Source: Macrostomum lignano
Lineage: Eukaryota
Length of the DNA: 64,000 nt
Direction: 5' to 3'
Assembly: GCA_002269645.1 (NCBI GenBank)
Contig: NIVC01000046.1
Location: 311,481 to 375,480 of the forward strand
Each line of letters opens with the position of its first letter. Position 1 is the stretch's first letter. The notes under the pieces were generated by a model that saw nothing but the letters and a program-made list of their open reading frames with translations, had not been told where the DNA came from and did no database searches. This document shows positions 441 to 64,000 of this stretch, piece by piece. A program made the translations under genes and the position numbers.

Positions 441-1318
441 GGTCAAGTGGGTCAGGGATCGGGTGGGTCAGGGGTCAAGTGAGTCAGGGATCGAGTGGGT
501 CAGGGATCGAGTGGGTCAGGGATCAAGTGGGTCAGGGATCAAGTGGGTCAGGGATCGAGTGGGTCAGGGATCGAGTGGGTCAAGGATCAAGTGGGTCAGG
601 GGTCAAGTGGGTCAGGGGTCAAGTGGGTCAGGGATCAAGTGGGTCAGGGGTCAAGTGGGTCAGGGGTCAAGTGGGTCGGGATCAAGTGGGTCAGGGATCA
701 AGTGGATCAGGGATCAAGAGGGTCAGGGATCAAGAGGGTCAGTCAGGGATCAAGAGGGTCAGGGATCAAGTGGGTCATTCAGGGATCAAGAGGGTCAGGG
801 ATCAAGAGGGTCAGGGATCAAGAGGGTCAGGGATCAAGAGTATCAGTCAGGGATCAAGTGGGTCAGTCAGGGATCAAGAGGGTCAGGGATCAAGAGGGTC
901 AGGGATCAAGAGGATCAGTCAGGGATCAAGTGGGTCAGTCAGGGATCAAGTGGGTCAGGGATCAAGTGGGTCAGGGATCAAGTGGGTCAGGGGTCAAGTG
1001 GGTCAGGGATCAAGTGGGTTCGGGATCAAGTGGGTCAGGGATCAAGTGGATCAGGGATCAAGAGGGTCAGTCAGGGATCAAGAGGGTCAGGGATCAAGTG
1101 GGTCATTCAGGAATCAAGTGGGTCAGTCAGGGATCAAGAGGGTCAGGGATCAAGAGGGTCAGGGATCAAGAGGGTCAGGGATCAAGAGGGTCAGGGATCA
1201 AGAGGATCAGTCAGGGATCAAGAGGGTCAGGGATCAAGAGTATCAGTCAGGGATCAAGTGGGTCAGTCAGGGATCAAGTGGGTCAGGGATCAAGTGGGTC
1301 AGGGATCAAGTGGGTCAA
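441..1318. repeat. G-rich minisatellite, ~16-bp unit GGGTCAGGGATCAAG(T/A)
   Basis: Direct tandem reiteration; explains the three overlapping GQGSSGSGIK ORFs at 416-1404. Confidence 0.95.
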
Positions 1319-1558
1319 AGATCTTTGAATCAAAGTCGCCAGTAACAATTATGCTTTTTACGAGCATGCAATTCAGTAAAAACCGAGTCAATAAACGAGC
1401 GTAACTACCAGTGGCCGAGGAAGATAGGAGAGCAATGACCTCAGTGATATCAGCCATAAAAATCTGCCCCATACCGGCTTCGGCAGAAACCAAACTATCA
1501 GTAAATAATAACTCTTTGCTGCATTAGTTTTGGTTGGTTTAAAGTGAATTTGAGGTCA

Positions 1559-10440
<8,882 letters not shown>

Positions 10441-29746: not shown

Positions 29747-32700
29747 ATGGACGAACCGCCTTCAGATGAGGGTCGACAGAGGCTTGAGAAATGTTTGACC
29801 ATTCTGTCAAAGAATGTACCAGTGACAGATCAGCTGCTTGAGCAGTTGGAGGAATCTCAGTTGATATCGCAGCAGAATGGAGTGAAATCGGTGAGTTGCG
29901 GGTTTTATCTACCAGTGTTAGGCTTTGCAATCTCCGTGGGTCTGCAGTCTCCGGCCGGAGATCGCAAGACAAATGTGACTCTGCTTTGCAATCTCGAGTC
30001 CCGGACAACGCAAAGCATAACAAAAGAATTTGAGATCTCTGGGGGTAAAAATGTACATGAGCGGTGTACAGCCTCGGGGCTAAAACTCTGCCAAATAATT
30101 ATTGGTTGCATGTGCAGGAACTCACACAGCCTTTATATGCAAACAGCTAATATACTCAGCAACAGTCAAAAGTTCCACCCCACTAAGCGAGATATTGCGA
30201 GTGACGCAACTTACGGCACGCGCAAAGCTTATTGCCACTTGGGGGTGGCTTGGGTCTGCTTAATGGTCCAGGAGGACAACGCGCCGCCACACCAAGCCGA
30301 TGCTGTCAGTCAACCGAAAGAACAGCTACAGCTGCGCACTCTGCGCTGGCCTTCCCGGTCCCCAGACATGAATCCCATCGAGCATGTCTGGTGACTTCCT
30401 AAAACGCAACATTCGAAAATAGAATCCACTATGAATTTTGCGGAGAGCTCTGCGTCATGCTATTGAAACGTGAACATGCTTCGGAGCAGCTTCCCCAGGA
30501 CTTTCTGCGCCGCCTCATCCTTGGGATGCCAGTCAGATTCTAACTGAATATTGCATAAAAAATTTATGATTTTGTGCCACTGAAGTTTACTACGAGTATT
30601 GATATTCAATCAACTTTCTCTTCCTCGCGGCGGCTTTATAGTCGCGTAACTTGAGGGTTGAATTGTGGGTGTGAAGTTTTCGCAATTTGGAGGGTGGAAC
30701 TTTTGACTGTTGCTGAGTATACTACTGTACCTAGCAGAGGTGAGCTCTAGATGCTCAGTGTATTTTAATAGCTATTTAATCAAGAATTTAGAAGGCTGCA
30801 AGTGTGACTGAGGTACTTGCAGTTTCAAATAGAGACAGACATGGAAAAGGCGAGTCTAAACCAAGTGTTCTTTTGCGAGCTCGTATTGAAGGAGTACGTC
30901 GAAATTCCTGGAGACTTGCCGGCCAAAGTTAGGGACAATTTGAAGCGCAAAATTTGAGAGAAAAGTAAAGTCTTTTGTGACGAATAAAGGCAGGAAGACG
31001 TACGGTTTGTGTAGCGGTTAAATTTGACAATCTAGAGCCAGCAGCCGACTTCCCTTAGCGTAAATTGCAGATTTGGTATGTTGAATTGAAGGTTAGGTTT
31101 GGATTGGTAGCTGCCTAATTTTAGTGCGACTAAAGCAATTGAATGCCACGGCTAAGGGCCCGCGAGAAGCGGAGCGAAAACCCAGGAGTGAAGAGAGAGA
31201 CTGCAAGCGTATATTTAATTGGTAGGTAAACAGATAAAAAACAACAACACCCCTAATCCAAAACCCAGACAAACCCCCCACGCGGCGCGCAATGTATATG
31301 TACAAATTAATCGATAAATTATATCGTGCAAGAATAACATACGCCAGTACATGTACATAGGTAGAACTATTTTACGAGAAAGAATAACGATATGAATGAA
31401 ATACAAATAGTTAGAATAAATACATACGAGGCTACAAAAACAAAGCAATTAACTGTAACATTAGCGCAATAATAATGCGTATAGAATATTGTTAAAATAA
31501 ATTAAAGAATACAAGTGGTACGGTATGCATGCGAGATAAGGAAATACGATCAGATGATTCTACGAATTACACTGTCACAAGTGAGAAACCGCAAGAAAGG
31601 CGCCCAGAACAGCAGCGGCGTGTTGCTCTTTACGGAGGATGAAGTCAGGGAAAAGATCAAAACACTGCACGTCGAGTCATGTTAAATAGGAATGAAGAGC
31701 ACCATTGGCCTCTTTACCGCGCGATTTTACAACGAAAAATAACGGGAGGTTTTAGGGTGTGGAGATTCTTCATGGGGAATCGATTTTTATTCATGTACCT
31801 AAACTTCGATAGAGGCATGGGGGTCTATTGAAAATAAGGTATTTAAAAGTTTTTGGGGTCGAAAGGGGAGTGACCAACAAAGAACAATGACCAATAACCA
31901 GGGCCTTTCATTCACCAAATTATATAGTATTAAGAAACAAAATAAAAATTTTCCTAACAGTAATTTTACATCCTTGAAACACTTTCACTTACGACTCGTA
32001 GTCTTTTTGTTCCAAAATATCATTTTAGTACATTATTGTTCTTTGACCCGGACATCACAATCCGGATAGCTCGTATCTCAAAGCAAACCTTAGTTTTTTC
32101 GGCAGGATGTTTCAACCTAGCTTGTGACTTCCGGGGGGAGACCCCCGGAACCCCGGAGACCCCGGAGAACGTAAAGCAGCTAACACAATACTATCCGAAA
32201 GTACAACACCGGGTAATGAAACACCTAGTAGGACCTCTGTGACTTTATAGTGAGCCATGCACTGTTCCTTTGGTTTGTGGGATTTCAGATCATGTACTGA
32301 TGCGACAACATATATATTTACAGCACAGAGACAGACAGGGAGAGAGATGGAGAGAAATTGATTTAGGACTTGGAATGGAATAGCGAGTGATCCCTTAATC
32401 CCTAAGTCTTCTGTAAGTTTGTCGGATAGTGCATAGATACATGTACATGCGCGTTGCTGCCAATAGAGAGGGGGCGGTTATTATTGCTTTTATTTCTTCA
32501 ATGTTCGGAGGGGAACGCTGGAGGGGAAATGGAAATGGGAGCCACAGACTGACATGTAAAAATACTGCAAAATAGAATACAGCACACGATTAATTTTATG
32601 CAGATATTTTGGCACAATCACAAGGACATACATATGCATGTACAGACATAGATATACAGACAGATAGACATATCAATTAAACCGATACAAACCTGCAGAC

Positions 32701-36321: not shown

Positions 36322-38260
36322 TGACCCAGTATGACCCAATCTGACCCAATCTGACCCAATCTGACTCAATCTGACTCAGTCTGACCTAATCTGACCCAGT
36401 ATGACCCAATCTGACCCAATCTGACCTAATCTGACCCAATATGACCCAATCTGACCTCATCTGACCCAATCTGACCCAATCTGACCCAATCTGACCCAAT
36501 CTGACCCAATCTGACCCAATCTGACCCAATCTGACCCAATCTGACCCAATCTAAACTAATCTGACCCAATCTGACCCAATCTGAGCCAATCTGACCCAAT
36601 CTGACCCAATCTGAGCCAAGGTGACCCCATCTGACCCAATCTGACCCAATCTGACCCAATCTGGCCCAATCTAAACCAATCTGACCCAATCTGACCCAAT
36701 CTGACCTAATCTGACCCAATCTGACCCAATCTGACCCCAATCTGACCCAATCTTACCCAATCTAAACCAATCTGACCCAATCTGACTCATTATGACCCAA
36801 TCTGACTCATTATGACCCAATCTGACCCAATCTAAACCAATCTGACCCAATCTGACTCAGTATGACCCAATCTGACCCAATCTAAACCAATCTGACCCAA
36901 TCTGACTCAGTATGACCCAATCTGACCCAATCTGACTTAGTATGACCCAATCTGACCCAATCTAAACCAATCTGACCCAGTCTGACCCAATCTGACCTAA
37001 TCTGACCCAATCTGACCCAATCTGACCCAATCTGACCCAATCTGACCCAATCTGACCCAATCTAAACCAATCTGACCCAATCTGACCCAATCTGACCTAA
37101 TCTGACCCAATCTGACCCAATCTGACCCCAATCTGACCCAATCTTACCCAATCTAAACCAATCTGACCCAATCTGACTCATTATGACCCAATCTGACTCA
37201 TTATGACCCAATCTGACCCAATCTAAACCAATCTGACCCAATCTGACTCAGTATGACCCAATCTGACCCAATCTAAACCAATCTGACCCAATCTGACTCA
37301 GTATGACCCAATCTGACCCAATCTGACTTAGTATGACCCAATCTGACCCAATCTAAACCAATCTGACCCAGTCTGACCCAATCTGACCTAATCTGACCCA
37401 ATCTGACCCAATCTGACCCAATCTGACCCAATCTGACCCAATCTAAACCAATCTGACCCAATCTGACCTAATCTGACCCAATCTGACCCAATCTGACCTA
37501 ATCAGGCCCAATCTGACCTAATCTGACCCAATCTGACCCAATCTGACCCAATCTGACCCAATCTGACCCAATCTGACCCAATCTAAACCAATCTGACCCA
37601 ATCTGACCTAATCTGACCCAATCTGACCCAATCTGACCCAATCTGATTCAGTATGACTTAATCTGACCCAATCTGACCCAATCTGACCCAATCTGACCCA
37701 ATCTGACCCAATCTGAGCCAAGGTGACCCCATCTGACCCAATCTGACCCAATCTGAGCCAAGGTGACCCAATCTGACCCAATCTGAGCCAAGGTGACCCA
37801 ATCTGACCCAATCTGAGCCAAGGTGACCCAATCTGACCCAATCTGACCCAATCTGACCCAATCTGACCCAATCTGACTCAGTATGACCCAATCTGACCCA
37901 ATCCGACCCAATCAGACCCAACTTTACCCAATCTGACCCAATCTGACCCATAATGACACAATATAACCCATAATGACACAATATAACCCATAATGACACA
38001 ATATAACCCATAATGACACAATATAACCCATAATGACACAATATAACCCATAATGACCCAATATGACCCAATATGACCCAATTTGACCCAATCTGACCCA
38101 GTTTTAACCAATCTGACCCAATCTGACTAAGTATGACCCAATCTGACTCAATATGACCCAATATGATCCAATATGACTAAATATGACCCTATATGACTCA
38201 ATATGACCCAATATGATCCAATATGACTAAATATGACCCAATCTGACCTAATCTGACCCA
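36322..38260. repeat. 10-bp minisatellite TCTGACCCAA (~190 copies)
   Basis: Starts upstream and ends ~60 bp from the innexin stop; shows higher-order duplicated blocks. Confidence 0.97.
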
Positions 38261-47645: not shown

Positions 47646-48420
47646 TTGGATCTGTCCTGGTTTCCTGATCAAATGATCAGCGGTCTAACCAGTGCTGAAA
47701 TCGCGAAGCAAGTCCAACTGATTGATAGAAATTCAGAGATTAAGAAGATCATATTTGATGACCTGAACGAGAATATTGACGGACGAGCTGCAATTGAGGA
47801 ACTTTTTTCGCTGTTACCGGATTGCCAGACTGATAAGTTGAAGGCACTGCTGATGAAACAGCATGCAGGAAGACACCAAGGTCAAGTCGACGGCCAGACA
47901 AGAAGACAGGGCCGTGGATCGCTTTCGGTGATTCCTGGAAGAGTATGTGGCTCTCACCTGTGCCTCTTTCAACATGATCAGTTGCGAAGAAAAAGAACTA
48001 GCCAACAAGTTAAGGTATTTTTATGCTACGTTGCGCAAAGACCAACGGTAGCTACTATTCACCGGCAACTTTGATGTGCATGCGTGCCGGTCTTTTCCGT
48101 TTCCTTTTGCGCACTCGGCAGCAAGTAAACATCAGCGCAAGCGAGGCGTAGAAGGCTGTTTGTAGACTGTTTTGCAAAACGGTGGACGCACTTAGCACTT
48201 CGAGGTTGTGGAAAAAGAGGCCTTCAACGAGATACGTAACTACATAGACCGGTCTTTTGTCACAGTGCTGCTTCACAAAGTTAATTTCATTGTTTATTAT
48301 TTATGCTGGCTAAATAAAGCAAAACGCCATCAACTATTGCTGCACGCTGGCAGCGTGCGGTATTGCGTGAAGTTATGGGTTTTTACACGCAGTCTATGGC
48401 AATACCTCGTATAAAGTAGG
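47646..48420 (+). pseudogene. Degenerate Crypton-type tyrosine recombinase, N-terminal half
   Basis: Across frameshifts and stops: DTKVKSTARQEDRAVDRFR*FLEE, ELANKLRYFYATLRKD, NGSYYSPATLMCMRAGLFRFL, LLHKVNFIVYYL. These resemble the Crypton/ZMYM-KCTD1 (DUF3504-associated) pattern L..F....RK.DG..Y.P.TL..R.GL.R.L. Confidence 0.65.
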
Positions 48421-48861
48421 CTACGGCTAGTTTGGCAATGTACTTTCCTGTGCACCCGAGCCGCCCCACCAAACTGATGCGATTTCAAGCCATTCATTGT
48501 TTTGCTTTGAACATGAATTTGCAAAAACAGACTCAGTACAGTTGACACACTGAGCAGCTTTTTACATCTCACAGTGGGCCATTAAATGCATTTAAAGATC
48601 TCACACTGTACTGAGGCACAATGGGTCAGCTCAGCCTCATCAAGTACAGCTTGGGGTGGCCGCTGCAGCTGCAGCCTCTCCGTTGCCATGCTGGGTGCAC
48701 AGAGGCGAAGGCGGAGGATTCAGCGCTCATGCTCGGGAGAGAAGCTTCTGTTGCTTGCTCAGGCCGGGGGTGGTTGGCCTCGCCAGAGGCTGAAAAAGGG
48801 AGGGCAGCTGAGAGATGAGGCGGTAAAATCTTTCTGGCAACCGGCTGCACAAACCTTTGAA

Positions 48862-49102
48862 ACATCTGCCACTTTGACAGCAGCCGTGACTGACATCTGC
48901 CACTCTGACAGCAGCCGTGACTGACACCTGCCACTCTGACAGCAGCCGTGACTGACATCTGCCACTCTGACAGCAGCCGTGACTGACATCTGCCACTTTG
49001 ACAGCAGCCGTGACTGACATCTGCCACTCTGACAGCAGCCGTGACTGACACCTGCCACTCTGACAGCAGCCGTGACTGACATTTGCCACTTTGACAGCAG
49101 CC
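48862..49102. repeat. 31-bp tandem repeat GACAGCAGCCGTGACTGACATCTGCCACTCT
   Basis: About 7.5 copies upstream of the ankyrin exon. Confidence 0.93.
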
Positions 49103-49464
49103 AAGGGTGATAGGTAGGATTCAAAAAGTTTAATAAAAATTCGTTTTTTAAAGGTCAAACCCCCCTCTCATTCTGTCTTGTCTATCTCCGTTTTCCTCCC
49201 CTTTTTCACTTTACTCTACCACTTCCGCCCTTGTACTAATAGTCTTTAACTTTAATTAATCAACACCGCAGAATGGATATATCTATCAGTGGAAGGATTC
49301 AAGTAACCAAATGGTAGTTAAAATGAGGTAAAACTCTTTAAAACTCTTTTTCAAAAAATTCACAACCGTATATAGCAGCCCCTTCTCCACATATTTCTCC
49401 CTCCCTCCCCGCATCCCTTTCTCCCCTCCTCTTTCCCTTTCCTTCCACTGCTTCACTATCTTCA

Positions 49465-52163
49465 ATGTCACCAAGCTACATTTTAACTATCAACAGTCGC
49501 ACAATGGACCAAAACCAAAGCCGCCAACTTCGAGAACAATCTCGACTGGCTGGAAGGCTCGGTGACTTGGAAGACGTCAAGTCTCTTGTTCAAAAATTCA
49601 CTGACCAAGCAAAAAGAGATCACTGCTGCATCGAGGCTGCCGAATCTGCTGTAAGAAATGGTCAGTGGGATGTCGTCAAGTTTGTAGTGTCGACAGTCGC
49701 TGACCAAGGAGAGAGAGATCAGTGCTGCATCCGGGCTGGAGAAAAGGCTGTAAGAAATGGTCAATGGGATGTCGTCAAGTTTTTCGTGCCGATAATCGCT
49801 GACCAAGCAGAAAGAGATCAGTGCTGCATCGAGGCTGCTAAATATGCGGCAGAAAATCGTCAGTGGGAAGTCGTCAAGTATCTCGTGCAGACAGTCGCTG
49901 ACCAAACGAAAAGAAACAACTGCTGCATTGACCTTGCGAAATCTGCTGAATTTCATCGTCAATGGGAAGTTGTGAAGTTTCTAGTGAAGACAGCAACTGA
50001 CCGGACAAAAAAAGATCAGCTCTGCACCAACGCTGCAAAATCTGCTGCAAGAAATGGTCAGTTAGAAGTCGTTAAGTGTCTCGTGCCACAAGTCGCTGAC
50101 CAAGCAAACAGAGATCGCTGCTGCATCGAGGCTGCGGAATCTGCTGCAAGAAATGGTCATTTAAAAGTCATCAAGTTTCTCGTGCAACAAGTTGATGACC
50201 AAACAAACAGAGATCGCTGCTGCACAAAAGCTGCAGAATCTGCTGCAAGAAATGGTCATCTAGAAGCCGTCAAGTTTCTGATACCGACGGTCGCTGAAAG
50301 AGATCAGTGCTGCATTGACGCTGCGGAATCTGCTGCATACAGTGGTCACTTGGAAGTCGTCAAGTTTCTCGTCCAGACAGTCGCTGACCCAACAAAAAAA
50401 GATCACTGCTACATCGAGGCTGCCAAATCTGCCGCAAGAAATGGTCACTTAGAAGTTTTAAAGTTTCTCGTCCAGACAGTCGCTGACCAAACAATAAGAG
50501 ATCAGTGCTGCATCAAAGCTGCGAACTGGGCTGCTATGAAGGGTCACTTAAATGTCGTCAAGTTTCTCGTGCTGACAGTCGCTGACCAAACAAAAAGAGA
50601 TCAGTTTTGCATCGACGCAGCAAAATCTGCTGTGAGCATTGATCAGTGGGAAGTTGTCAATTTTCTGGTGCTGACGGTCGCTGACCAAACAAATAGAGAT
50701 GATTGCTGCATGAAAGCTGCTGAATCGGCTGCAACCAAGGGTCACTTAGAAGTTGTCAAGTTTCTCGTGCCGACATTCGCTGACCAAACAAAAAGAGATG
50801 AGTGCTGCATGAAAGCTGCAGAATCGGCTGCAACCAAGGGTCACTTAGAAGTCGTCAAGTTTCTCGTCCATACAGTCGCTGACCAAACAAATAGAGATGA
50901 TTGCTGCATGAAAGCTGCAGAATCGGTTGCAACCAAGGGTCACTTAGAAGTTGTCAAGTTTCTCGTGCCGACATTCGCTGACCAAACAAAAAGAGATGAG
51001 TGCTGCATGAAAGCTGCAGAATCGGCTGCAACCAAGGGTCACTTAGAAGTCGTCAAGTTTCTCGTCCATACAGTCGCTGACCAAACAAAAAGAGATCAGT
51101 GCTGCATGAAAGCTGCAGAATCGGCTGCAACCAAGGGTCACTTAGAAGTCGTCAAGTTTCTCGTCCATACAGTCGCTGACCAAACAAATAGAGATGATTG
51201 CTGCATGAAAGCTGCAGAATCGGCTGCAACCAAGGGTCACTTAGAAGTCGTCAAGTTTCTCGTGCCGACAGTCGCTGACCAAACAAAAAGAGATGAGTGC
51301 TGCATCAAGGCTGCTGAATCTGCTGCAAGCAATCGTGAGTGGGAAGTCGTCAAGTTTCTCGTCCATACAGTCGCTGACCAAACAAAAAGAGATGATTGCT
51401 GCATCAAAGCTGCTGAATCTGCTGCGAGAACTCATCAGTGGGAAGTCGTCAAGTTTTTGGTGCCAACAGTCGTGGACCAAACAAACAGATATCAGTGCTG
51501 CATCGAGCCTGCGAAATATGCTGTAAGCATTGGTCAGTTAGAAGTCTTAAAGTTTCTCATCTCGTGTCTCTCAAGTCCGGATCAGAGAGCGAATCTCCGT
51601 TTCCAATGCGCAGTCGCGGCTTGCTCTCGTATTCACGAAGATGTCGTTGCCTCCCTCGGCCTCGAGCCCGACTGGCTCTTTCAATCCAGCTCCATCCTCA
51701 GCTTCACTGCAGCAATGGCCATCGAAGGAAGGAACTCTGTTCTCACCAGCACCCTCTCTCGAATGCAGCCAGCTCACATCACACAGCTGCTTTGTCTCTC
51801 CATCTCTCAAAGACACGTCGCTATTGCTGTCACACTGATCAATGATAACCGAGTCAGCACACAGCATGTCGATCTGCCAGACAACACTGGAGCCACTGCT
51901 CTCATGCTGGCAGCTGATGCAGGTCATCACGAGGTCATTGAGAAACTCATTGATCTCGGTGCGTCAGTGCGTGCTGAAGACAGTCAGGGTCGGACTGCTC
52001 TGTCACGAGCGTGCGAAGCCGGTCACGTGCGAGCAGCCAAGGCTCTGATAGACAGAGGAGCGAATGCGAGTCATCGAGACGGTCGGGGTCTGACGTGTGC
52101 GCAGGTGGCACAGCGGTTTGAGCAGCGGCAGGTGCTGCGACTGCTGGATCTCAGTGGAGTGGG
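49465..52163 (+). CDS. Exon 1 of the ankyrin-cGLR gene: 20 tandem 33-aa Cys-Cys ankyrin-like repeats plus 3 canonical ankyrin repeats (899 aa)
   Basis: Uninterrupted ORF. The array at 49600-51570 has consensus ADQTKRDxCCxxAAxSAAxxGHLEVVKFLVxTV. C-terminal canonical repeats are TGATALMLAADAGH and QGRTALSRACEAGH. The ORF's TGA lies inside a perfect GTGAGT donor at 52164 (phase 2). Confidence 0.92.
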
Positions 52164-54006
52164 GTGAGTGACTTGACTAACGTGACTTGACTCAGCTGCA
52201 GTGAAATATTTTAAATATGGTATCGTTCTTCTGGTCTCTCACTCCTATGGCTCTATGTCTACTTCAAGTATTAATGTGAGAGCCAAATAACTGAGGCGGC
52301 GGATTCAACTGACTTTTCCTGATGATGCAAACACTTGATTGTAACTTACAGACCGTTGTATTTGATGGTCACAATCTCGAGATGTACTCGTAATCTTACA
52401 AAATTTAATGTCTAAGATGGAATTCCAAATAAGAAGCTCGTTCAGCTCAAGTTACAAGGAGTTTCTGATTGTTTGAGTGAACCGAAGGTTCAGTCTATTG
52501 TGGAGCGTGGGTTGGTTGTTGGTTTAGTTTTAGTTAGTCAATTTATCAGTTTTGGTGTTTTGGTTGATATCCTAACTGTGTCAATCAAAGGTTGTCCTGC
52601 GGAGAGAGCGTGCAAAATAAGGTAGGCAGAGGAGAGGCAAAAGAGGGGAAAGAGGGGCGGACTAGAAAGGGGAAGAGAGGCGAGCTTCTTGCTTGGTTAA
52701 AATGAGCTTTTATAGTTACTTTTCAGTCTTGGTCGCATTGGTTGTTGCATAGGTACTTTCCATTGGTTGGGGTCGTGTCCTCAGCTTTTGCTAGTTGAAG
52801 CGCATTCATTGGTTAAAATACACTCGATCTGGATGGGAACTTTCTTAGGGCCAAAATGTGTCACTTCAGAAGGCGGTTCTAGGCATCCGGATGCGGCGAA
52901 GAGGCGTGTGTTGCCAACCATTTTGCTAACCCCTCGCGACCACGGGCAGCTAGTGCTGCGGTATCGTACAGTGCCAGTGTTATGCCAAGGATTATCCTAG
53001 GCAGAAAAGTACTCGCCTGGGTGCTGTGACTGTAAGCCAAGCCGAACCATAAACAAAATGATTTGCTTGCCAGCGCACCCTACGCTTTAGCGATCTACGC
53101 GTAACAAGAGCAAGCTAGGCTTGCAGAAATAAATATCAAGACTTGCTCATTTGATTTGTCATTAAAAAGCAGAAGACACAACAGCGGCATCGCAAGCAGG
53201 ATGGCACCACCAACACCGGCATCTGAGAAAAATGGCATCGCCAGTGAAGTCTGCAGCAAAGACGGTGACTAAGGATGGCAAAGTGCCACTGCCTTCGAGT
53301 CTGGAAGGAATCGGCCAAACTGCACAATTCCACCAGCCAATGATCGGAAACAAAATGCTTAACATGATCGACATTGAGAAGCTGGAGGAAGGAAAGTCAT
53401 TTTTACGATGTATGGAACGCTTCACAGTTACGGCCAATCTCTGCAAATAGGTAGAAGAAGAAAAGGCGCAGATTTTGCTCATGCGTCTGTCTGCTGGTCT
53501 GTCCGACACTCTGGCGGATCATCTCGCTCCTACATTACCGAGCACAATGTCTTTCGAAGAGCTCAAAAAGGCGCTGAAGGAGATCCTGGTGCCTAAAACA
53601 TATGTTTTGTCTGAACGGTACGCCTTTCAAAATGCCAAAAAGACGCAAAAGAGGGCATTCGAGAATTCGCTGAGAGGCTGCTCAAAGCGTCGGATAAATG
53701 TGCATTTAGCAACAAGGAGGAACGGCTCCGGGACCAATTCATCTGCGGACTGAATGATAAGGTCATCATAGCAAAGCTGCTAATCCGAGATTTTGAGGAG
53801 CTAACCTTCAAGGCTGCTGTGGCGGAAGCCGAGGCGTATGCGTCACTGAAGAACACACAAATAATGCAGTCAGCGACGGCATCAAAAGCAGAAGGGACGG
53901 TCATGAAAATCGGCAGCTCAAAACCAACACTGTCATCCCACCCAGAGGAGACAAGAAGTGCCCTCGGTGTGGTGGCAACCAGCATCCAAAGACAGCATAC
54001 CCGGCT

Positions 54007-56319
54007 ATGGGAAAAACCTGCAAGAGATGCGGTAAGCCAAACCACTTTCAAAAGGCATGTCGGTCAAGCGTATCCGGTCAAAAGAACTTTGTGGCTCAGG
54101 ATTCTAAAGAAAGAGACATTTTGCACACTGACACTGGCAGAGAAGCGTCGTGCTCTACAGTGAAGCTGGCATGTCAAGTGGAAGGCAAAATGCAATCCAT
54201 AATCTGTCAGATTGACACGGGAGCTTCAGTTTCAGTTCTGTCCAGCAAGCTGTGGTGGAAATTTGGAAAGCCGAAGTTGCAAGGTAGCACCTCGACTTTG
54301 GTGGGCTACACCGACGGACACAAATTCGACCAATTGGGTTCATTGCCTGTCGTCACGGAATGGAAAGGAAGAAACATCAAGATTACGTTTCAAGTAGTAC
54401 GCTCAAACCGCAACTTTGCATTGCTCGGACGAGATGTCATCAAACTCAATCCGGAATGCGTCTCTATTGGACATACAGAGATGAAGGATTCAGTTCCGTT
54501 CAAGGCAAGCTTACGATTAGTCGATGGCGCAGTGCCCAAGTACATCAAAGCGAGGCCTGTGCCATTCGCATTGCGTGAGCGTCTGAAATGCGAGATCGAC
54601 AAGCTTGTGACTGACGGAGTTATCAAGCAAGTTAGCTTTTCGCAGTGGGCGTCACCCATTGTGACTGTGCAAAAACCCAATGGCGGTCTCAGGATCTGTG
54701 TCGACTATAAGACGACAGTCAATCCACAGCTACAGCAGGATAGCTACCCGTTGCCGACAGTTGAAGAAGCATTCGCAGCAGTGACAAATTGCAAATACTA
54801 CACGATTCTGGATCTCGAGAAGGCATATAACCAGGTGCACCTAGATGACTCTTCCAAAGATATCACTGTGATGTCTACACCATTCGGGAACTTCAGATAC
54901 AACCGCCTTGTCTTCGGGTTAAAGACTGCCCCCAGTATTTTCCAACGTTACATTGTGGAAGTGATTCAAGGAATTTTTGAAGCAGCAGAATATGTCGATG
55001 ATATTCTCATTGGCGGCGAGACCAAAGAAGACCTCAGAGACAGAGAAGCTGAAGTTAGAGCACGGTTGGCCAAGCACAACTTGACAGTAAACGAGGAAAA
55101 ATGTCAGATAATGCAGACTTGTGTCCGCTTTCTGGGTCACATTCTCGAGTCAGGGACAGTGAAGCCAGATGAAGAGAAGGTGCGTGCGTTAAGGGAGATG
55201 TCAGCCCCTAAAAATCTACCGGAATTGGAATCGTTTCTTGGCCTCGTTAATTTATGCGGTAAATTTATTCGCAACCTCGCAGAACTCATTGAGCCCCTGT
55301 CACAGCTTAGACGCAGAGGAGCCGAGTTCACTTGGACAGACAAGCACGAACAAGCCTTCAATAAGATCAAGATGGCACTGTCGACTGAGTCTATGTTGCA
55401 TTCGTACGATCCGAAGAAACCAGTGGAAATCGAATGTGACGCTTTGCAGGTGGCCATTGGTGGCGTGCTCTCTAAGGAAGGCAGGCCCATAATCTCCATT
55501 AGCAAGTTGTTGTCACCGGCAGAGAAGAGGTATTCGCAGATCGAACGCGAAGCATTGGCGATTGTCTGGGGCATTCGGCGATGTCACCGGTTTTTTTGTG
55601 GCAGAGAATTCTCGCTAGTAACTGACCACCGCCCTCTGACCTTCGTGTTCGGACCCTCCAGTCAGCTACCAGAAAGGGTTTCGGCGCGCCTGCAAAGATG
55701 GGCTATTTTATTGTCCGGCTACGACTACAGCATAACATATCGGAAGTCGGCGGAGATGCGATCTGATGCACTATCTAGGCTTGTAAACGCTTCGATGGAG
55801 GCTCCAACTCACGCGATTGGTGCAATCCATCTTTCAGAAAGTCATCTGCTCAAGCTGACCGATATTCGGTTTTGGTCCAGGAAGTGCCACGAACTGCGAA
55901 ATCTCCGAGAGGCAATTCAAACTGGACAGTTCTCGAACAGTGAGATGCGTAGCTACAAACCACTGGCTGGAGAACTATCAACTGAGGGAGACTTGGTGCT
56001 TCGTGGGTTCAAGATAGTCTTGCCAGTTGCACTTCGAGATAAAGCAGTGAACGCAGCTCACGGTGTACACCTAGGCATGGCACGCACTAAGTCTCTATTG
56101 CGCGAGTACTTCTGGTGGCCAGGTGTCGATAAGGCGGTAGAGCGTGTAGTTGGTTGTTGTCTGACATGCAAGAAGGCGAAGCCTCTAAATCGGAATTTCC
56201 GAACTTCATGGCAAGCACCACAAGTCCCCTGGGATCGAATTCACATCGATTTTGCGGGTCCGATGGAAGGACAATATTTGCTCGTTATTGTTGATTCTCA
56301 TTCGAACTATGAACTATGA
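54007..56319 (+). CDS. pol: Gypsy gag-end/pol: CCHC knuckle, protease, RT, RNase H, integrase Zn finger
   Basis: CKRCGKPNHFQKAC, DTGAS, LRICVDYK, FGLKTAPSIFQ, YVDD, IECDA, TDHRPL, HLGMARTK..C..C, RIHIDFAGP. The frame is broken by a GAACTAT duplication at ~56304-56335; the integrase core continues to ~56800. Confidence 0.93.
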   Translation: MGKTCKRCGKPNHFQKACRSSVSGQKNFVAQDSKERDILHTDTGREASCSTVKLACQVEGKMQSIICQIDTGASVSVLSSKLWWKFGKPKLQGSTSTLVGYTDGHKFDQLGSLPVVTEWKGRNIKITFQVVRSNRNFALLGRDVIKLNPECVSIGHTEMKDSVPFKASLRLVDGAVPKYIKARPVPFALRERLKCEIDKLVTDGVIKQVSFSQWASPIVTVQKPNGGLRICVDYKTTVNPQLQQDSYPLPTVEEAFAAVTNCKYYTILDLEKAYNQVHLDDSSKDITVMSTPFGNFRYNRLVFGLKTAPSIFQRYIVEVIQGIFEAAEYVDDILIGGETKEDLRDREAEVRARLAKHNLTVNEEKCQIMQTCVRFLGHILESGTVKPDEEKVRALREMSAPKNLPELESFLGLVNLCGKFIRNLAELIEPLSQLRRRGAEFTWTDKHEQAFNKIKMALSTESMLHSYDPKKPVEIECDALQVAIGGVLSKEGRPIISISKLLSPAEKRYSQIEREALAIVWGIRRCHRFFCGREFSLVTDHRPLTFVFGPSSQLPERVSARLQRWAILLSGYDYSITYRKSAEMRSDALSRLVNASMEAPTHAIGAIHLSESHLLKLTDIRFWSRKCHELRNLREAIQTGQFSNSEMRSYKPLAGELSTEGDLVLRGFKIVLPVALRDKAVNAAHGVHLGMARTKSLLREYFWWPGVDKAVERVVGCCLTCKKAKPLNRNFRTSWQAPQVPWDRIHIDFAGPMEGQYLLVIVDSHSNYEL

Positions 56320-57269
56320 ACTACTCGAACTATGACACGGGACATGACATCCACTACGGTGATCTCGAGGTTGAGAAGAACATTCTCCCAGCTAGGGGTA
56401 CCGAGAGTCCTGGTGTCCGACAATGGATCAAGCTTTGTTAGCTAAGAGACACGAGTTTGGTTGACTCAAATCGGGTGCGATCATGTAACAACCCCAGCAT
56501 ACCACCCAGCTAGCAACGGTCTGGCTGAGCGATTTGTTCGTACAATAAAAGAAGCTGTCAGTGCAAATGGATTTTCCAAAGCCGCAATCGACAGGTACCT
56601 TCTATTCTACCGTGCATCAGCGGGCAAAGGAGACACATCACTAGCAGTATTACTGATGGGAATAAAACTGCGTGTACCTTTGATGTCAGCAGCTGGATGG
56701 AGTCCTGGTGAAACCGTAGTTTACAAGATGGAGAAGTCAACACACGAGGCCAAGCTGATCAAGCCATTAGGAATACCGCAATTGTCAAGCTGGAAGACGG
56801 AAAATTCCAGAAAGTGCACAGAGATCAAATTCAACGAACAAGCTCAAACCCGAAGTCTCAGGAAGACGATCAATTAGATTCGAACAAGAATGTCAGCATT
56901 GGAAACCCAATGATGCGTGAAAACGATGGCAACCCTGGTGGAAAGCATGTGCACGATGACGATGGCATTTCGGAACTGCAAATGGATTCTCAGTCCGAGT
57001 GGACCATACGTTTAAGCCAGCTATACCAGAATTACCACGGCGCAGCACACGGCTGGAGCAAAAGCCAAAAGTGAATTACAAGGAGTGACTATTTTGAGAC
57101 TTCCTTCATCACTCAAGTTTGGGACTTAAACTGTTCAAGTTATTTTTATAAAAAGGGGAGACGCTGTGGCTATAAGCCAAGCCGAACCATAAACAAAATA
57201 ATTTGCTTGCCAGCGCACCGTACGCTTTAGCGATCTACGCGTAACAAGAGCAAGCTAGGCTTGCAGAAG

Positions 57270-57655
57270 TATAAGATAATCCCCACTTGATTTCGTTTCT
57301 TTGGCCTAGGAACGGCTGAGGACTGCGTCCTCAGTCGAAGTCGTTCTAGGTCAAACTGAGTCCGAAGTCGTTCTAGGTCATAGACAACCAAATCAAGTGG
57401 GGGTTATAATATTTAATTGCCGCAGCCAGCGGGAGGAAATGAGACTACCATAGACAATTATTTCTTGGCCTCCAAAAAACGCCTGATGGGAGTCTCAACT
57501 CATTTGAAAGAATGTTTTTTAGCCATAGACAATTATTTCTTGGAGTCCAAGAAATGAAAATACACGGAGGAGATGGCAGCTGGCCGGGCTAAAGCGGGGA
57601 TTAAATAAATAAAAAGACAAGAGTCGAAGATCGGCTGGTTAATTTAACATTTTAA
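57270..57655. mobile_element. Non-autonomous CATAGAC-family element inserted in the Gypsy 3' LTR
   Basis: Absent from the 5' LTR. Contains an inverted copy (57276-57325) and a direct copy (57388-57449) of the 46340-46432 region, and a direct copy (57446-57610) of 47040-47205. Confidence 0.8.
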
Positions 57656-58299
57656 GTTCAAGACTTGCTCATTTGATTTGTCATTAAAAAAACAGAAGAC
57701 ACAACACTGGGTAACTTTGGATGCGTTATTTTATTCGAGCCCAGATGGAATACGGCACGACATAAGTCATGTCAAGCGCACTTCTAGAGTGATTTCTCTC
57801 TGAGGATTACGAAATAAAAAACTTGTCAATAATCGCAGAGAATGATCTGATACGACGTGGTGATTCGTATTCGTATTACCTCAATGGATATTACCGAATT
57901 TTTATAGCCGCGCATTCTCGTCCAAAAGTCTTGAATTTTTTTTAAGTCCTCTGACTTTCAGTACATCTAAATCTATACAGTATGATATGTATCATTGTAC
58001 ATTTTGTTACGCAACACGTTGGCATGTATATCCACTACTAGTACACTGGACTTCGTGCACTTGGCTTTTTATTTTAAGGCACTAATATCATAAATATGTG
58101 TGTCGCGTATTCCGATACAAAACTTTACTTGCATAGCGGCGCAAAAGACATCCCTGCGTCTTTTACAATAACAAAGGAGAAGAACAACTTCAAAAGCAAG
58201 TTGAAAAAAAGCAAGATGGCCAGCAGCTGTTCCATCAGATCTCAGGAATGATAGTCAGGAAAAGCGCTATCGGTCAACGGTGCGTCGCCTGGAGGTAGA

Positions 58300-58635
58300 A
58301 CATCAAGAAGAGTGGTGTGGATTGATCCATGAAAATCGGGCATCTGCCACTGGTATAAGCTATCGAAGCTGACCTATCACTGGGACGGCATGAAAAATCT
58401 ATTTAAGATTGCGTTCAAAAGTGCGCTGTCTGTCAGCATCCTCAGCTTCAAAGTCGGTGACAAGGTGTTTCTGCGGAACTTCGACCGTGACGATCGGAAG
58501 GGTGGCAAACTGAAGACACCGTGGTGTACCAAGATTTACATGGTCGAACATGTCATAAACAATAACCTGTACGGACTTGAGGGAACTGTACAGAGATCAT
58601 GCAATGGCCGCCACCTGAAGAAATACCAGGAATAG
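58300..58635 (+). mobile_element. Internally deleted Gypsy/Ginger-type integrase fragment
   Basis: IHE..GICH..KL.KLTYHWDGMKN (Zn-finger region) is fused to FKVGDKVFLRNFDRDDRKGGKLKTPW (GPY/F-type C-terminus). Confidence 0.55.
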
Positions 58636-59613
58636 GTCATTTAAAGAATTTCTAACATTTTAAGAGTAATTTTAGGCTATTAATTTAAACAATTGTTGCA
58701 AAAGTTCAAATTGTCGTCATCTAAAATGTTTGTTATGAACTGAAGACTAAAAAGGTTTCTAACTTAACTCAACTGCTATAGAGCAATGCAAAATATACCT
58801 GCGTTGTTTTATTCGGCTGAATGATTAAAGACGACAACGTATTTTGCCAAATACTTTTCAGCATCCAAACTTATTTGGTCATCTTGAATTCTCTCACTCG
58901 CTTAACAGAAACTATCTCTAGTCTATTTTATTTGTCTTAGATACTTCACTTTGCAACAAAAAGACAAGGACCAAGAACTTAATGAAGTACTCGTACACAA
59001 AATTAGCTACTGAACTTAATACTCGAATAAGTATACTCGACTAAGTAAGCAAGTCTAATGCAATAGTCGACTTGATTTCAAAAATAAATTAATGGCAAAA
59101 GGCATATTTTGCCTCTTTTTACAAAAAGATAAAGCCTGCACGTTTTAGAAAGATCCGCAAAGAAATTACGAAGGAAGTTGAATTATCAAGCCTCATTTTC
59201 CTTAACTTCCTACTTTATAGATCTTTCATTAGGCTTCATTAAGTTTTCCAATTCATACTAAGCATTTAAGGTGCAGCCACGTTGAGCTTGTGTTGCAATT
59301 ATTTTATTAAGAGCCTAAAGTTACCCTAAAATATGTCCAGTAAGCATAGGATCCATAGCCAGTTAGAAATTCTTTAAATCACCTATTCGTGGTATTTCTT
59401 TGTGTGTGCTTTCTCGTGGTCTTTTGCTTCAGCCTGTCTCTCCCTCCACTTTTTGTTTTTTTTACTTGAAAAGCGTTGCAATTTTGATAAAGCACTGACT
59501 GAGAATTTAACTTCAAATACAATAGGACTTTGCGACTCACTGAAGTGATTTGTGCCGCCTGAGAATCTGACTCAACAGCTGTGAGAACTCTTGCTTTCCT
59601 TCCAACATTGCAG

Positions 59614-59667
59614 AATCACAGAGACCCAGCAGGCAGCCGCTCACCGCTGGGATTCGGGCCTCCATCG
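59614..59667 (+). CDS. Exon 2 of the ankyrin-cGLR gene (54-nt linker exon, phase 2-2)
   Basis: Acceptor TTGCTTTCCTTCCAACATTGCAG and donor CG/GTGAGT; reads (G)ITETQQAAAHRWDSGLH(R) with no stop, bridging exon 1 and exon 3 in frame. Confidence 0.6.
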
Positions 59668-60879
59668 GTGAGTCTGACCGGTTCAGCTTTCCTTACCTCA
59701 TTTGCGCAGTGACATTTATAATATTGTGATATCGGCAAATAGTTTAGGCCCTAGACAAACCTATACTGGAGCGATCGGAGATTTTAAAACTTTTAATTCT
59801 TAGCTCCTAGCTAATTTGCCTATCGCCGGTCGGCGAGTCCTACCAGACTTTCTCCAATAGTCGCAGATACGGTACGAGAAATTGAATAACACAGAATTAA
59901 GACTAATCCAGATAGATTTAGATTGAGTGATAGTCCTTATCTGAGAGAATAATGGCTGAGAGTTGAATGTTTATAATTGATTAACACGGAGTTACACGGA
60001 TTAGATAACGCAATTTGCAATTTAACACTCGATAAAATAATAACGCACTTTGGCCAGCGGATCTTGGCTAACGGAGAAGCTTTCCTACAAACCTGGCCTG
60101 ATCCTACTCTCAGAAGAGGACACTCAGGGCCTGGTAGTTCAGTGAATCCCTGGCCAAATCCTACCAGATATGCCTTTCAGTGAAACACTGGGGCCCTCGG
60201 GATCGAGGTCGCGTACTGTGTCAAACCGGAAGCTCCTGTCTAGACCGTGCTTGCCGACGACAAACTCTGAACGAGGTCGTCGCGAATGTTACGCCGGCAA
60301 GGCTACTGCGGTCGGGCAACGGAATAAAATATGGGCCTGGGCTCGACTCGATAGGCGCCTCAAAGCGCGGCAGGTGGCAAAACGGCCAGCAGATGAGAAC
60401 AGAGGCCGGAAAGAAAAACCAGCACTCGAGATCCGACTGCCAAAAACATAGTTTCATATACAGTTACTCCAAAACCCCCTCAGGCCGGTGGTGGGTTTTT
60501 GGCTGGCCGATCAATAATTCCACTTGCATTTAACCCGCGGCGCGCTCTCAGGCCGGGTAGATCTGGCTTGCCGCGTGCCAGGGGCCCAGGCCGATCCTGA
60601 TTTGCTGACCGCGCAAAGCCGGCTACATTGCTAAGTTTTCGACCCTCCGCTGAGCCTGAGCCGGACTGGTTCTGGAAACGTGTCGAACTGTTTTGAATTA
60701 TTTTACAAAAATAAACTCTAACTAACAAAAAGAAATTTAATAAACATGACTAAAAATTGAACAAATCAACAATTAGTAATTCGAAGACTAACAGTAATTT
60801 ACATTAGATGCTCACATTACAGCGTCTTCCAACAGGCTGGCAGCGAAACTCAGGGCAGTTAAGTTAAGATTGGGTTGGA

Positions 60880-61220
60880 CTGAGTGCTGCAGGAGCTGCA
60901 CTCTCAGCTCTCCTGCTTGAGATGCCAGTCTGAATGCTGCAGCAGCTGCACTCTCAGCTCTCCTGCTTGAGATGCCAGTCTGAGTGCTGCAGCAGCTGCA
61001 CTCTCAGCTCTCCTGCTTGAGATGCCAGTCTGAGTGCTGCAGCAGCTGCACTCTCAGCTCTCCTGCTTGAGATGCCAGTCTGAGTGCTGCAGCAGCTGCA
61101 CTCTCAGCTCTCCTGCTTGAGATGCCAGTCTGAGTGCTGCAGCAGCTGCACTCTCAGCTCTCCTGCTTGAGATGCCAGTCTGAGTGCTGCAGCAGCTGCA
61201 CTCTCAGCTCTCCTGCTTGT
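60880..61220. repeat. 50-bp tandem repeat CTGAGTGCTGCAGCAGCTGCACTCTCAGCTCTCCTGCTTGAGATGCCAGT
   Basis: About 6.5 copies just upstream of the cGLR exon acceptor. Confidence 0.95.
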
Positions 61221-61273
61221 TCTGTCCATCCAACTCTGAGCAAATCACCCACACGCATCTCGGATCATTCCAG

Positions 61274-61638
61274 GCTCTCAGACGACTCCCAGCAAGACAG
61301 GCGCCTGAGCGAGGAGCTGCATCGACTGCTCAGCGATGCGGGATTCACCGAGCAGAGAGCAAAGTGTCAGCAGAGACTGGCTGACTGGCTGGAAGAAGTC
61401 GCTCGAGTCCTCACACAGGATGGCAGGCGGATGACGGGCAGCTACGCAGAGGGCTGGGCCAACAGTCTGGTGCAAGTGAACGGCAGGACAGCTGCAGACT
61501 CGGACATTGACTGGACTGTGCTGGTTGCTGGGCAATGGTTCCATCTGGAAGGTGGCTGCAGTGGACAATATGGTTTCTGCAGAGACGCCACTCGGCTGCA
61601 GGTCACGGAGGGCCACGCACAGGTGGCAGTGGGAGCAG
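61274..61638 (+). CDS. Exon 3 of the ankyrin-cGLR gene: Mab-21/cGAS-like nucleotidyltransferase, N-terminal catalytic half
   Basis: Acceptor CATTCCAG and donor G/GTGAGT. The spine-like helix RRLSEELHRLL...RLADWLEEVARVL is followed by MTGSYAEG, DSDIDWTVL (GS plus DxD) and EGHAQV. Confidence 0.78.
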
Positions 61639-61891
61639 GTGAGTGAGGCTGGGTTCATCATCAGAATGCTGAGATCCGCATGCAACTGGAAGCTCAATAA
61701 CTTTGTGCTATATCTCGTGGATTCAATATTGTTTTATTTGCGAGCGTAGCTCAGCTCAGCCGCGTCTTGAGTGGTCTAACGCCGAGACCCTGTCTTTGTC
61801 TGTCTTTATTGCGAAATTATTTCGAAAAGATTCGGTCTATATACATTAGCTCATATATTGTCCAAGCAACAAAAATACTTAAAACATTAAA

Positions 61892-64000
61892 TCACGACAC
61901 AGTGTCTTCCCCCTCTCTAAAAGGTTTACCAGCCGTAGCGTTGCACCGGTGGCTGCTGCGGTTCGATTTGAAGTGAGCGGTATAATCGCTCGTCCTGAGG
62001 CTGGTCTTGGTATGTTGGTGGTCGCCCCTTCCTGCGCTGGTCGGTATAAGCCGCCGTTCGCTGCTGTTCTCCCTAATTAGCTGAACGATATCTGGCCGTG
62101 CTTCCGTGGTGTACTTAGATAGAGCCAGTACAGTCAGTGCGGTGTGCGAACGTCTTCCTAGCATCAGCTCCGCTGGACTCTTGCCAGTCAGACCATGCGG
62201 CGTACTGCGATAGGTCTTAAGGAATTGCAGCAGCGCGTCTTGCATGGGGACATTCTCTGCCCAGGCCACTCGTATGCTGTCTACCAGAGTCCAGTTAAGC
62301 CTCCCCGTCTGACCGTTAGTGCTCGGACGGTAGGGGATGGTCTTCTGATGCTGGATGCCGCGCTCCCGGAGGAACCCTGTGAGCTCACCGCCTAGCTGCG
62401 GTCCGATGTCCGTGAGCAGCATCTCGCAGAGGCCCCAGCGTGCGAAAAGGCTGCGTAACACTTTGCAGGTCGTCTCATTGGTGATGTTTGACGTTGCGAA
62501 TACTTCCGGACATTTACTATGCAGATCCGTAATGACCAGAAGGAATCGTGACGATGATGGTGCTGCCTGTAGCTCACCCACGATATCGATGGCGATCTGT
62601 GTCCACGGCTTATCTGGTCACCGCAGAGGCTGCAGAGGAACCGGTCGCAATTTGAAATTCTTTTCTGCGGCCTATGACAAACGTCTCCACGTCGCAGTTT
62701 ATCATTGGCCAACAGGTGAACTCACTGCTGCTTAGTGTGAACCACACTCGAATGAACGGTGTGCGCCGATTCCAGTAGCTTACGCCGCAGCCGATGTGTA
62801 ATGACTGCTCGCTCTTGAAAAGCCAGGCACGTGCCATCCTGTCAAACGCTAAGGGCTCTCGGACTTTGACAAACGGGTGCAACCCGTGTCCTTCGTTGAG
62901 CCCCAGTTGCCGTTAGTCACTCGCTCAATCAACTGTCGCAAAACCATGTCCTCGGCCGTGGCTGTCGCTAGCTGGGTAGGTTTAACTACTTGGACTTGTG
63001 GCGTCGCAGTGTCCGCTAGCTGTACGATGTTCATGTCCGACCCACAGCTCTACCTTAACACAATGTCGGCAACGAAGTTCCGATTGCCTGGCAGATATTG
63101 TACGTGGAAATCGTACTGTTGAAACCTGTCGCACCAGTGGTGGATGCGCAGCGGCCGATGTCCCGTGCCGCTACGGGTAGGTCCCAACAGTAGTTGACGT
63201 AGCGCTTGATGGTCTGTTCGTAGCTCAAACTGGCACCCATACAGATAGTAGTGCCACTTCTACATGGCCAAAAGACTGGCCAATGCCTCCCGCTTATTTG
63301 CAGCGTATCGCTTCTCGGTGTCAGTCAAAGCTCGGGAGACAGAGGCGATTAGGCGGTCGACGCCGTCTTGGACCTAGAACAGCTGTGCACCAAGAGACTC
63401 TGCACTGGCGTCGGTGGTGACAATCATCTCGGCCTCTGGGTCAAAGTGCGCCAGGATTGGTGGATTGCAGCTCGCTGATTTTAGCTCTTGGAACGCTCTT
63501 TCGCAGTGCGTCGACCACTCGAACTCTGCATCCCCTTTCAGTAGGGCCCTCAGAGCTGTCTTTAGCAAAATTGGGCAAAAAGCGCATTAGGTAGTTTGCA
63601 GATCCTAGGAACGCCTGCAGATCCTTTCGGTTCGACGGCGAGCGCAACTGGCTGAATGCCTTGGTCTGAGACTCTGAAGGTCGCATACTGTCGGCTGTGA
63701 AGATGAAGACGAAAAATTCGACCTCCGTATTGCGCAGCAGGCATTTGTCCTCCTTTTTGGCCGTTAGGCCGCGCCAGCGTCGTTCACACACCGTCGTGGC
63801 TCTCGCAGTCTTGAATCGTGTTCAGTCATGTTTGCCCCGAAAACAAAGAAATCGCCCAGAATATGTTAGACCCCGTCAAGTTCGGCTACTATGTCGTCCA
63901 ACATCCTTTGGAAGGCCGCTGGCGCTGACGCTAAGCGAACGGCACTCTGCAATACCGATATAAACCCCGGTGCGTGATGAATGCCGTCAAGTCACGCGAT
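61892..64000 (-). mobile_element. Second, degenerate Gypsy pol (RT-RNase H-integrase), antisense, running off the window
   Basis: TAFITHRGLYRYCRVPF (RT, ~63920-64000), LQAFLGSANY, IVTTDAS (RNase H), WTQIAIDIVG/FLLVITDLHSKCPEV and TDIGPQ...PYRPSTNG (integrase); many frameshifts. Confidence 0.9.

Follow-up and report, generated by a model that had tools for sequence, protein, structure and literature searches.

A Macrostomum lignano locus very probably holding three of four coding exons of an ankyrin-fused cGAS-like nucleotidyltransferase gene

Introduction

Does a long ankyrin-repeat open reading frame (ORF) of Macrostomum lignano encode a complete protein, or is it the first exon of a gene that continues, several kilobases further on, into a cGAS-like nucleotidyltransferase (NTase)? 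The question is raised by a stretch of 64,000 nt from contig NIVC01000046.1 (assembly GCA_002269645.1, positions 311,481 to 375,480, forward strand), hereafter the window, in which the ORF list gives a 900-aa ORF at 49465-52167 with its own ATG and a TGA stop at 52165-52167. A preliminary description, made from the letters alone, had joined this ORF to a distant exon carrying GS and DxD motifs and had read the whole as a modular innate immune receptor split by introns filled with transposable elements. We find that the window very probably holds the first three of the four coding exons of a paralogue belonging to the Macrostomum family of ankyrin-fused cGAS-like receptors (cGLRs), the gene combining an ankyrin array with a cGAS-like NTase.

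Results

The ankyrin ORF continues by splicing into an NTase exon

Joining exons 1, 2 and 3 (Table 1) through canonical GT-AG sites yields a single open frame of 1039 aa, which reads ...LDLSGVG-ITETQQAAAHRWDSGLHR-LSDDSQQDRRLSEELHRLLSDAGFTEQRAK...MTGSYAEGW...DSDIDW... across both junctions. Exon 2, which encodes an 18-aa linker, is entered through a ...TTGCAG acceptor and left through a GTGAGT donor, and exon 3 lies between a ...TTCCAG acceptor and another GTGAGT donor. Altogether, about 3.1 kb of coding sequence runs without a stop or frameshift, and the five splice sites of the window are all consensus. The preliminary description had placed the TGA inside the first donor and had recognised both the phase-2 exon of 54 nt and the exon at 61274; every one of these coordinates proved correct to the base.

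The same gene structure is found in PAA62074.1 (P0030; BOX15_Mlig034155g1), a complete M. lignano protein of 1217 aa whose locus (L001) lies on contig NIVC01001976.1 of GCA_002269645.1. The joined protein of the window is colinear with it over both junctions and 76% identical across 629 aa, the residues at the junctions being ...LDLSGVG/ITETQQAAAHRWDSGLHR/LSDDSQQ in the window and ...LDPSGAG/SPEARQAAAHPLDSGLHR/LSDDSKQ in the paralogue. In P0030, the long ankyrin exon is likewise followed by one of 54 nt and another of about 366 nt, and one last exon encodes 555 aa; the splice-site flanks of the two loci are near-identical, and the GGGTGAGT donor with its in-frame TGA is present in both. The proposal that the ankyrin ORF and the GS...DxD exon form one gene is thus upheld both by the in-frame GT-AG join and by a colinear paralogue with the same exon plan. 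Since the GenBank annotation of GCA_002269645.1 was derived from RNA-seq and a genome-guided transcriptome assembly (PMC5730564), the junctions are transcript-supported in the paralogue, not at the window locus. Furthermore, seven more partial M. lignano models span ankyrins, linker and NTase (P0005, P0006, P0008, P0012, P0015, P0025 and P0027), and the exon 3 peptide matches M. lignano proteins only, at 83-93% identity.

These data bear directly on the reading in which TGA 52167 is a true stop, the 900-aa ORF an ankyrin-only gene complete in itself, and the NTase-like exon part of a separate gene or a stray fragment. The ORF does have its own start and stop, and retention of intron 1 would give exactly the 900-aa protein, so that such an isoform is conceivable. 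However, the transcript-derived coding sequence of the paralogue reads through the same TGA-in-donor by splicing, several independent models join ankyrins to NTase, and exon 3 lacks an ATG-initiated context, while its acceptor and the mini-exon are conserved. We consider an ankyrin-only gene highly improbable.

Two peculiarities were noted among the paralogue models. The 54-nt mini-exon is read in two frames, 'QAAAHRLDSGLHR' versus 'AQRPDRQPLTAWIRASI' (P0010, P0014 and P0017 against P0001, P0002 and P0006; window 59601-59675), the second of which requires another acceptor; an AG at 61280-61281, 8 nt inside exon 3, would be available. The linker frame may truly differ among paralogues, or else some of the models are wrong. 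In addition, P0056 (3379 aa) matches exon 3 in antisense with 92% identity (window 61350-61544, minus strand), and this model seems, from the alignment, to contain a family exon translated in antisense.

Both ends of the gene were then compared with the paralogues. A tblastn search with P0030 residues 665-1217 gave no match to the last coding exon within the window. In the paralogue, the single last exon encodes the third catalytic Asp together with the C-lobe and a helical C-terminal extension; the corresponding fourth exon of the window's gene should lie beyond position 64000, in agreement with the preliminary description, which had placed the third acid and the C-terminal lobe outside the window. 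At the other end, about 300 bp 5' of the ATG are conserved with two paralogues, which fits a complete 5' end; the counterparts of this upstream block lie at L001 9534-9841 and 29563-29863. The block contains a 31-bp tandem repeat (48862-49102, 7.8 copies) that is present in fewer copies 5' of the paralogues. Further upstream, ORF 47646-48074 was considered as an extra N-terminal exon, possibly of a death fold, and rejected, as it has no Pfam match, no paralogue counterpart and no match in family proteins. On L001, some 9 kb past the end of the PAA62074.1 gene, lies a second paralogous ankyrin exon (30026-31065) preceded by the same upstream block, so that the family is at least partly arranged in tandem.

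Table 1. Coordinates of the gene, its introns and the inserted elements in the window
Feature	Position	Strand	Description
Upstream block (putative promoter / 5' untranslated region)	48590..49103	+	80-83% DNA identity to stretches 5' of two paralogous ankyrin exons; promoter role inferred
Coding exon 1	49465..52163	+	2699 nt; ATG start; ends in phase 2
Splice donor GTGAGT	52164..52169	+	contains the apparent ORF stop TGA 52165-52167
Intron 1	52164..59613	+	7450 nt, against ~460 nt in the paralogue (~16 times longer)
Long terminal repeat (LTR) retrotransposon, Ty3/Gypsy-type domain order	53023..57706	+ (sense)	in intron 1; Pfam domains and direct repeats
Coding exon 2	59614..59667	+	54-nt linker mini-exon, phase 2 to phase 2; encodes (G)ITETQQAAAHRWDSGLH(R); conserved flanks
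Intron 2	59668..61273	+	1606 nt; 50-bp tandem repeat at 60880-61219
Coding exon 3	61274..61638	+	365 nt; N-terminal spine helices and first beta-strands of the cGLR/Mab-21 NTase core
Intron 3 (start)	61639..64000	+	GTGAGT donor at 61639
Retroelement pol remnant	61892..63752	-	antisense in intron 3; RNase H-region similarity and integrase core

Exon 1 encodes the longest ankyrin array among the relatives retrieved

The product of exon 1 is an ankyrin-repeat protein built of tandem 33-residue repeats that match ankyrin profiles: the 900-aa ORF is matched by Pfam Ank_2 (E 3.7e-96, 316 bits, 15 matched stretches), Ank_4 (244 bits) and Ank (201 bits). It opens with 20 degenerate ankyrin-like units of 33 aa in strict register, with the consensus QTKRDQCCIKAAESAARNGHLEVVKFLVPTVAD, underlain at the DNA level by a 99-nt tandem repeat (49561-51558, 20.3 copies by TRF). 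A non-repeat linker follows, and then canonical ankyrin repeats (~51811-52080; residues 783-872, the best Ank_2 stretch). Unit number differs among paralogues, as expected from the variable array of the preliminary description, with 20 units in the window copy and 0-8 in the relatives retrieved (some of these models being N-terminally partial), so that the window copy carries the longest array among them. Near-identity among six central units suggests that these arose by recent duplication or amplification. By entropy, the most variable positions of the unit are 3, 6, 10, 17, 18 and 29, and three of the variable positions would map onto canonical binding-surface positions of ankyrin repeats. 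The variable unit number, the recent amplification and these positions would speak for a binding role of the array.

The domain begun by exon 3 has a cGAS/Mab-21 fold

A Pfam scan of the 121-aa exon 3 alone matched no family, Mab-21 included, and the short relatives P0019, P0021 and P0023 likewise gave no significant Pfam match. We therefore turned to the paralogues, of which at least 30 proteins were listed. A phmmer search with P0024 (329 aa, the remainder of the domain) against 1.84 billion cluster representatives returned 126 matches. The close named relatives among the matches listed were all from M. lignano; eight close matches that were scanned carry ankyrin repeats together with Mab-21_C. 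The distant matches are canonical Mab-21 proteins, with PF03281 in 22 and PF20266 in 31 of 34.

The assignment of the exon 3 domain to a divergent Mab-21/cGAS-like NTase fold is supported by profile and structural comparisons alike. A family profile (A2) of 26 sequences aligned by hhalign with canonical Mab-21 proteins at a probability of 100% (E 2.3e-39), in a register that brings together the GS, the DxD, the third Asp (RPAxD against the canonical D-x-V) and the WR.SFS..E and SYH.KT columns. Against PDB sequences, the same profile found Sp-cGLR1 (8gjy, 3.8e-8) and cGAS (5.7e-8). Such a profile was needed because phmmer with the single P0024 sequence gave no significant Mab-21 match among PDB sequences (MAB21L1 at E 0.31).

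An AlphaFold model of P0030 residues 541-1010 reached a pLDDT of 88 and a pTM of 0.90. The modelled domain is that of the paralogue, about 88% identical to the window over exon 3; of this domain, no more than the first ~121 residues are encoded in the window. In this model, GS follows strand 54-57, D80 and D82 open strand 80-94, and D141 sits within strand 139-148. The best 50 Foldseek matches in the PDB were all cGAS, MAB21L1 or Sp-cGLR1, each with a probability of 1.0 and a target-normalised TM of 0.45-0.58; the paralogue's modelled domain thus has the bilobal cGAS/Mab-21 fold, and the fold family of the gene is shown by these comparisons.

The catalytic signature is conserved throughout most of the family

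Exon 3 of the window contains an intact MTGSYAEGW (GS at 61437-61442) and an intact DSDIDW (D-I-D at 61503-61511), i.e. the hGS and [DE]h[DE] motifs of the NTase. Among 39 relatives, the GS columns are kept in 37-39 and those of DxD in 33-37; the third acid occurs in 32, as RPAxD, at the D-x-V column of the canonical proteins, and the full G-S-D-D-D signature in 31, demonstrating its conservation across the family. All members of the subfamily nearest to the window gene retain the G-S, the DxD and the third D. A candidate third catalytic strand lacking the acid, 'ELRVSFSF', was rejected, since the alignment equates it with 'WRLSFS' of cGAS and the true third Asp is that of the upstream RPAxD.

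Two M. lignano relatives, P0035 and P0152 (PAA59752.1 and PAA80948.1), combine a cGLR-like domain and ankyrins with a C-terminal caspase domain (Peptidase_C14, E 2.7e-25), with degenerate residues (D-N, S) at the DxD and third-D positions. Judged by domain content, these caspase-fused paralogues would tie the family to death or immune signalling.

The Mab-21-like domain might instead be a non-enzymatic scaffold like MAB21L1, the protein being an ankyrin adaptor, for instance in caspase or death signalling, that makes no nucleotide signal. MAB21L1 does figure among the structural matches, the DxD and the third D are gone from the caspase-fused P0035 and P0152, and the active cGLRs reported include no flatworm enzyme (PMC9980059). 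Nevertheless, the full set of G-S, DxD and third D persists in 31 of the 39 members, among them every member of the subfamily nearest to the window gene, a retention that is hard to explain without selection for catalysis, and the window exon has its GS and DID intact. A scaffold role appears to us doubtful, and a putative NTase remains the preferred reading of the domain.

Retroelements occupy introns 1 and 3

The element in intron 1 carries Pfam RVT_1, RT_RNaseH, Integrase_H2C2 and rve_3 domains (the last on ORF 56461-56877), in the order protease, reverse transcriptase, RNase H, integrase. With this pol order and flanking LTRs, it is of the Ty3/Gypsy type. Its direct repeats (53023-53183 against 57163-57271 plus 57658-57706) are 95% identical. 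The pol frame is interrupted between the zinc-finger and core regions of the integrase (ORFs 54007-56319 and 56461-56877), and the ORFs of its gag region gave no domain matches. Outside the element but still within intron 1, an 81-aa ORF (58390-58635, plus strand) resembles by eye the C-terminal part of a retroelement integrase, with no Pfam match.

Intron 2 holds 6.8 copies of its 50-bp repeat (98% matches), ending about 55 nt before the exon 3 acceptor; no transposon was recognised in it, and its ORFs gave no domain match. The remnant in intron 3 has a Pfam rve match (E 1.3e-7, 32.2 bits) just below the cut-off of 32.6 and shares 31-42% identity by tblastx with the pol of the intron 1 element; its minus-strand ORFs 62613-62882 and 63444-63791 gave no Pfam match. 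Classification of this second element as Gypsy is not supported, the rve match below cut-off and the pol similarity to the first element being all that speaks for it. The preliminary description therefore holds for introns 1 and 3, which do carry retroelements, and fails for intron 2, which has a tandem repeat only; what it called a second Gypsy is shown only to be a retroelement remnant with pol/integrase similarity on the minus strand. In P0030, intron 1 measures about 460 nt and intron 3 about 6 kb. Retroelement insertions would have swelled introns 1 and 3 of the window copy and left its coding sequence and splice sites untouched.

Such insertions raise the possibility that the window copy is a dead or dying paralogue, in which the LTR element of intron 1, the antisense element of intron 3 or a lost last exon blocks the full-length mRNA. 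An intron 1 some 16 times longer than that of L001, a last exon not within the window, the want of an exact protein on record and a large, redundant family, in which loss of a single copy is plausible, would all be in keeping with this. Against it stand the uninterrupted coding sequence of about 3.1 kb, the conserved upstream block and five consensus splice sites that match those of the expressed paralogue exactly or nearly so; moreover, the exclusion of repeat-overlapping transcripts from the annotation could alone explain the missing model. Loss of function is, in our view, unlikely, and we favour an intact paralogue with enlarged introns.

Other features of the window

ORF 23286-24011 (plus strand) has a strong match to the Tubby C-terminal domain (Pfam Tub, E 3.1e-46) and is probably an exon of a tubby-like gene. 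At its end, ORF 29747-30394 (plus strand) matches a DDE_3 transposase slightly below the cut-off (E 1.7e-6), and it looks like the remnant of a DNA transposon of the DDE (DDE_3) type. Long low-complexity minisatellite tracts with strong local GC and AT skew lie at 400-9900, 18100-23300 and 37600-38200, and give rise to spurious ORFs of 150-480 aa on both strands.

Discussion

The locus illustrates how a split eukaryotic gene can be read from raw sequence even with a stop inside a splice donor, a mini-exon of 54 nt and exons about 9 kb apart. In the product that we propose, exon 1 would supply the 20 degenerate units and the canonical ankyrins, exon 2 the linker, and exon 3 the N-terminal helices and the GS and DxD strands; a last exon beyond the window, predicted to encode ~555 aa as in the paralogues, would add the third catalytic Asp, the C-lobe and the helical C-terminal extension. 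The protein would act as a signalling NTase whose ankyrin array may control its activity or localisation by binding a protein or another non-nucleic-acid partner. The roles suggested by the preliminary description, the array as ligand sensor and, as in metazoan cGLRs, a cyclic dinucleotide product that signals through STING, are hypothetical for this protein.

Several observations weigh against this interpretation. PF03281, the Mab-21 NTase domain, was reached neither by the exon of the window alone nor by the N-lobe of the close relatives scanned; among these relatives, only PF20266 (Mab-21_C) reaches or nears its cut-off of 24.1 bits (28.8 for P0026, 24.0 for P0024, others also narrowly below). 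The Mab-21/NTase fold named in the preliminary description stands on the profile-profile, AlphaFold and Foldseek comparisons. As the last exon lies outside the window, an intact catalytic triad is only predicted for the window copy. Transcript support for the junctions comes from the paralogue, and an exact-protein look-up of the 900-aa ORF product found none on record. Transcripts overlapping repeat annotations were excluded from the GenBank annotation (PMC5730564), and the missing gene model may stem from that exclusion. The NTase core of the subfamily is also basic (pI 8.3-9.3), as in nucleic-acid-sensing cGLRs; the ankyrin array need not be the sensor. Finally, NTase-domain constructs of five M. 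lignano proteins were screened with dsDNA and poly I:C, and none of the 15 active enzymes described is from a flatworm, their sources being insects, anemones, molluscs, hydras and corals (PMC9980059); catalytic activity is hence putative.

A bolder scenario, which we find attractive but rather unlikely, takes the tandemly amplified, copy-number-variable ankyrin arrays as direct ligand sensors in a large, fast-evolving Macrostomum repertoire, following a logic like that of NLR and VLR repeat receptors, and this in a phylum from which immune cGLRs are otherwise reported to be absent. STING might then be bypassed, as hinted by the caspase-fused paralogues, and intron retention at the conserved donor stop might yield an ankyrin-only isoform serving as decoy or regulator.

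The preliminary description had presented the gene as part of a modular innate immune receptor family; the novelty of such a family does not survive comparison with the literature. Li et al. 2023 described ankyrin- and TPR-fused cGLRs with examples from Stylophora (PMC9980059), and their Table S2 lists the M. lignano cGLRs with Ank_2 PAA68676.1, PAA86972.1, PAA45980.1, PAA67649.1 and PAA58690.1. Five M. lignano constructs, numbers 89-93, entered the biochemical screen (Table S3; PMC9980059), and two of these, 92 (PAA93208.1, cGLR-92) and 93 (PAA68676.1, cGLR-93), plainly belong to the subfamily of the window. Both this kind of gene and this very family were thus already catalogued in 2023; our literature search on cGLR, cGAS or STING in flatworms or Macrostomum found nothing beyond that study. 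The novel finding is a further paralogue, whose array is unusually long and whose introns are laden with retroelements. The locus alone does not change what is known: it adds a copy to a Macrostomum-specific ankyrin-cGLR expansion so far present only in supplementary tables. The family is of interest chiefly as a candidate system for cGLRs with possible non-nucleic-acid activators, and transgenesis, which is supported in M. lignano (PMC5730564), would help work on it.

Among known proteins, PAA62074.1, PAA68676.1 and PAA93208.1 share the architecture of the window's product, namely degenerate ankyrin units of the KRDxCC type, canonical ankyrins, a linker and a divergent cGLR domain, and PAA62074.1 also shares the four-exon plan and the splice flanks, with 76-89% identity over the shared parts. 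The window copy differs from all three in its 20 units (0-8 in the relatives retrieved), its retroelement-bearing introns and the lack of an exact annotated protein. The ankyrin-fused cGLR of Stylophora pistillata likewise couples a cGLR core to ankyrins, which are proposed to mediate protein or ligand interaction (PMC9980059). Compared with such fusions in other animals, the window family belongs to another lineage and has a much more divergent NTase core, and its tandemly amplified ankyrin units lack the TPLH motif.

With cGAS and Sp-cGLR1 (PDB 4k9b, 6cta and 8gjy), the family has in common the bilobal Mab-21 fold, the N-terminal spine helix, the GS after beta-1, the DxD on beta-2 and the third Asp on a later strand. 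In contrast, identity to these enzymes is 13-17%, the gap between GS and DxD is 20 residues here against about 12, and the domain is followed, unlike in cGAS and Sp-cGLR1, by a helical C-terminal extension of roughly 300 aa. MAB21L1 (PDB 5eog) has the same fold and appears among both the Foldseek and the sequence-profile matches; however, while Mab21L1, Mab21L2 and Mab21L3 have no predicted functional active site (PMC9980059), the window family keeps the acidic triad in most of its members.

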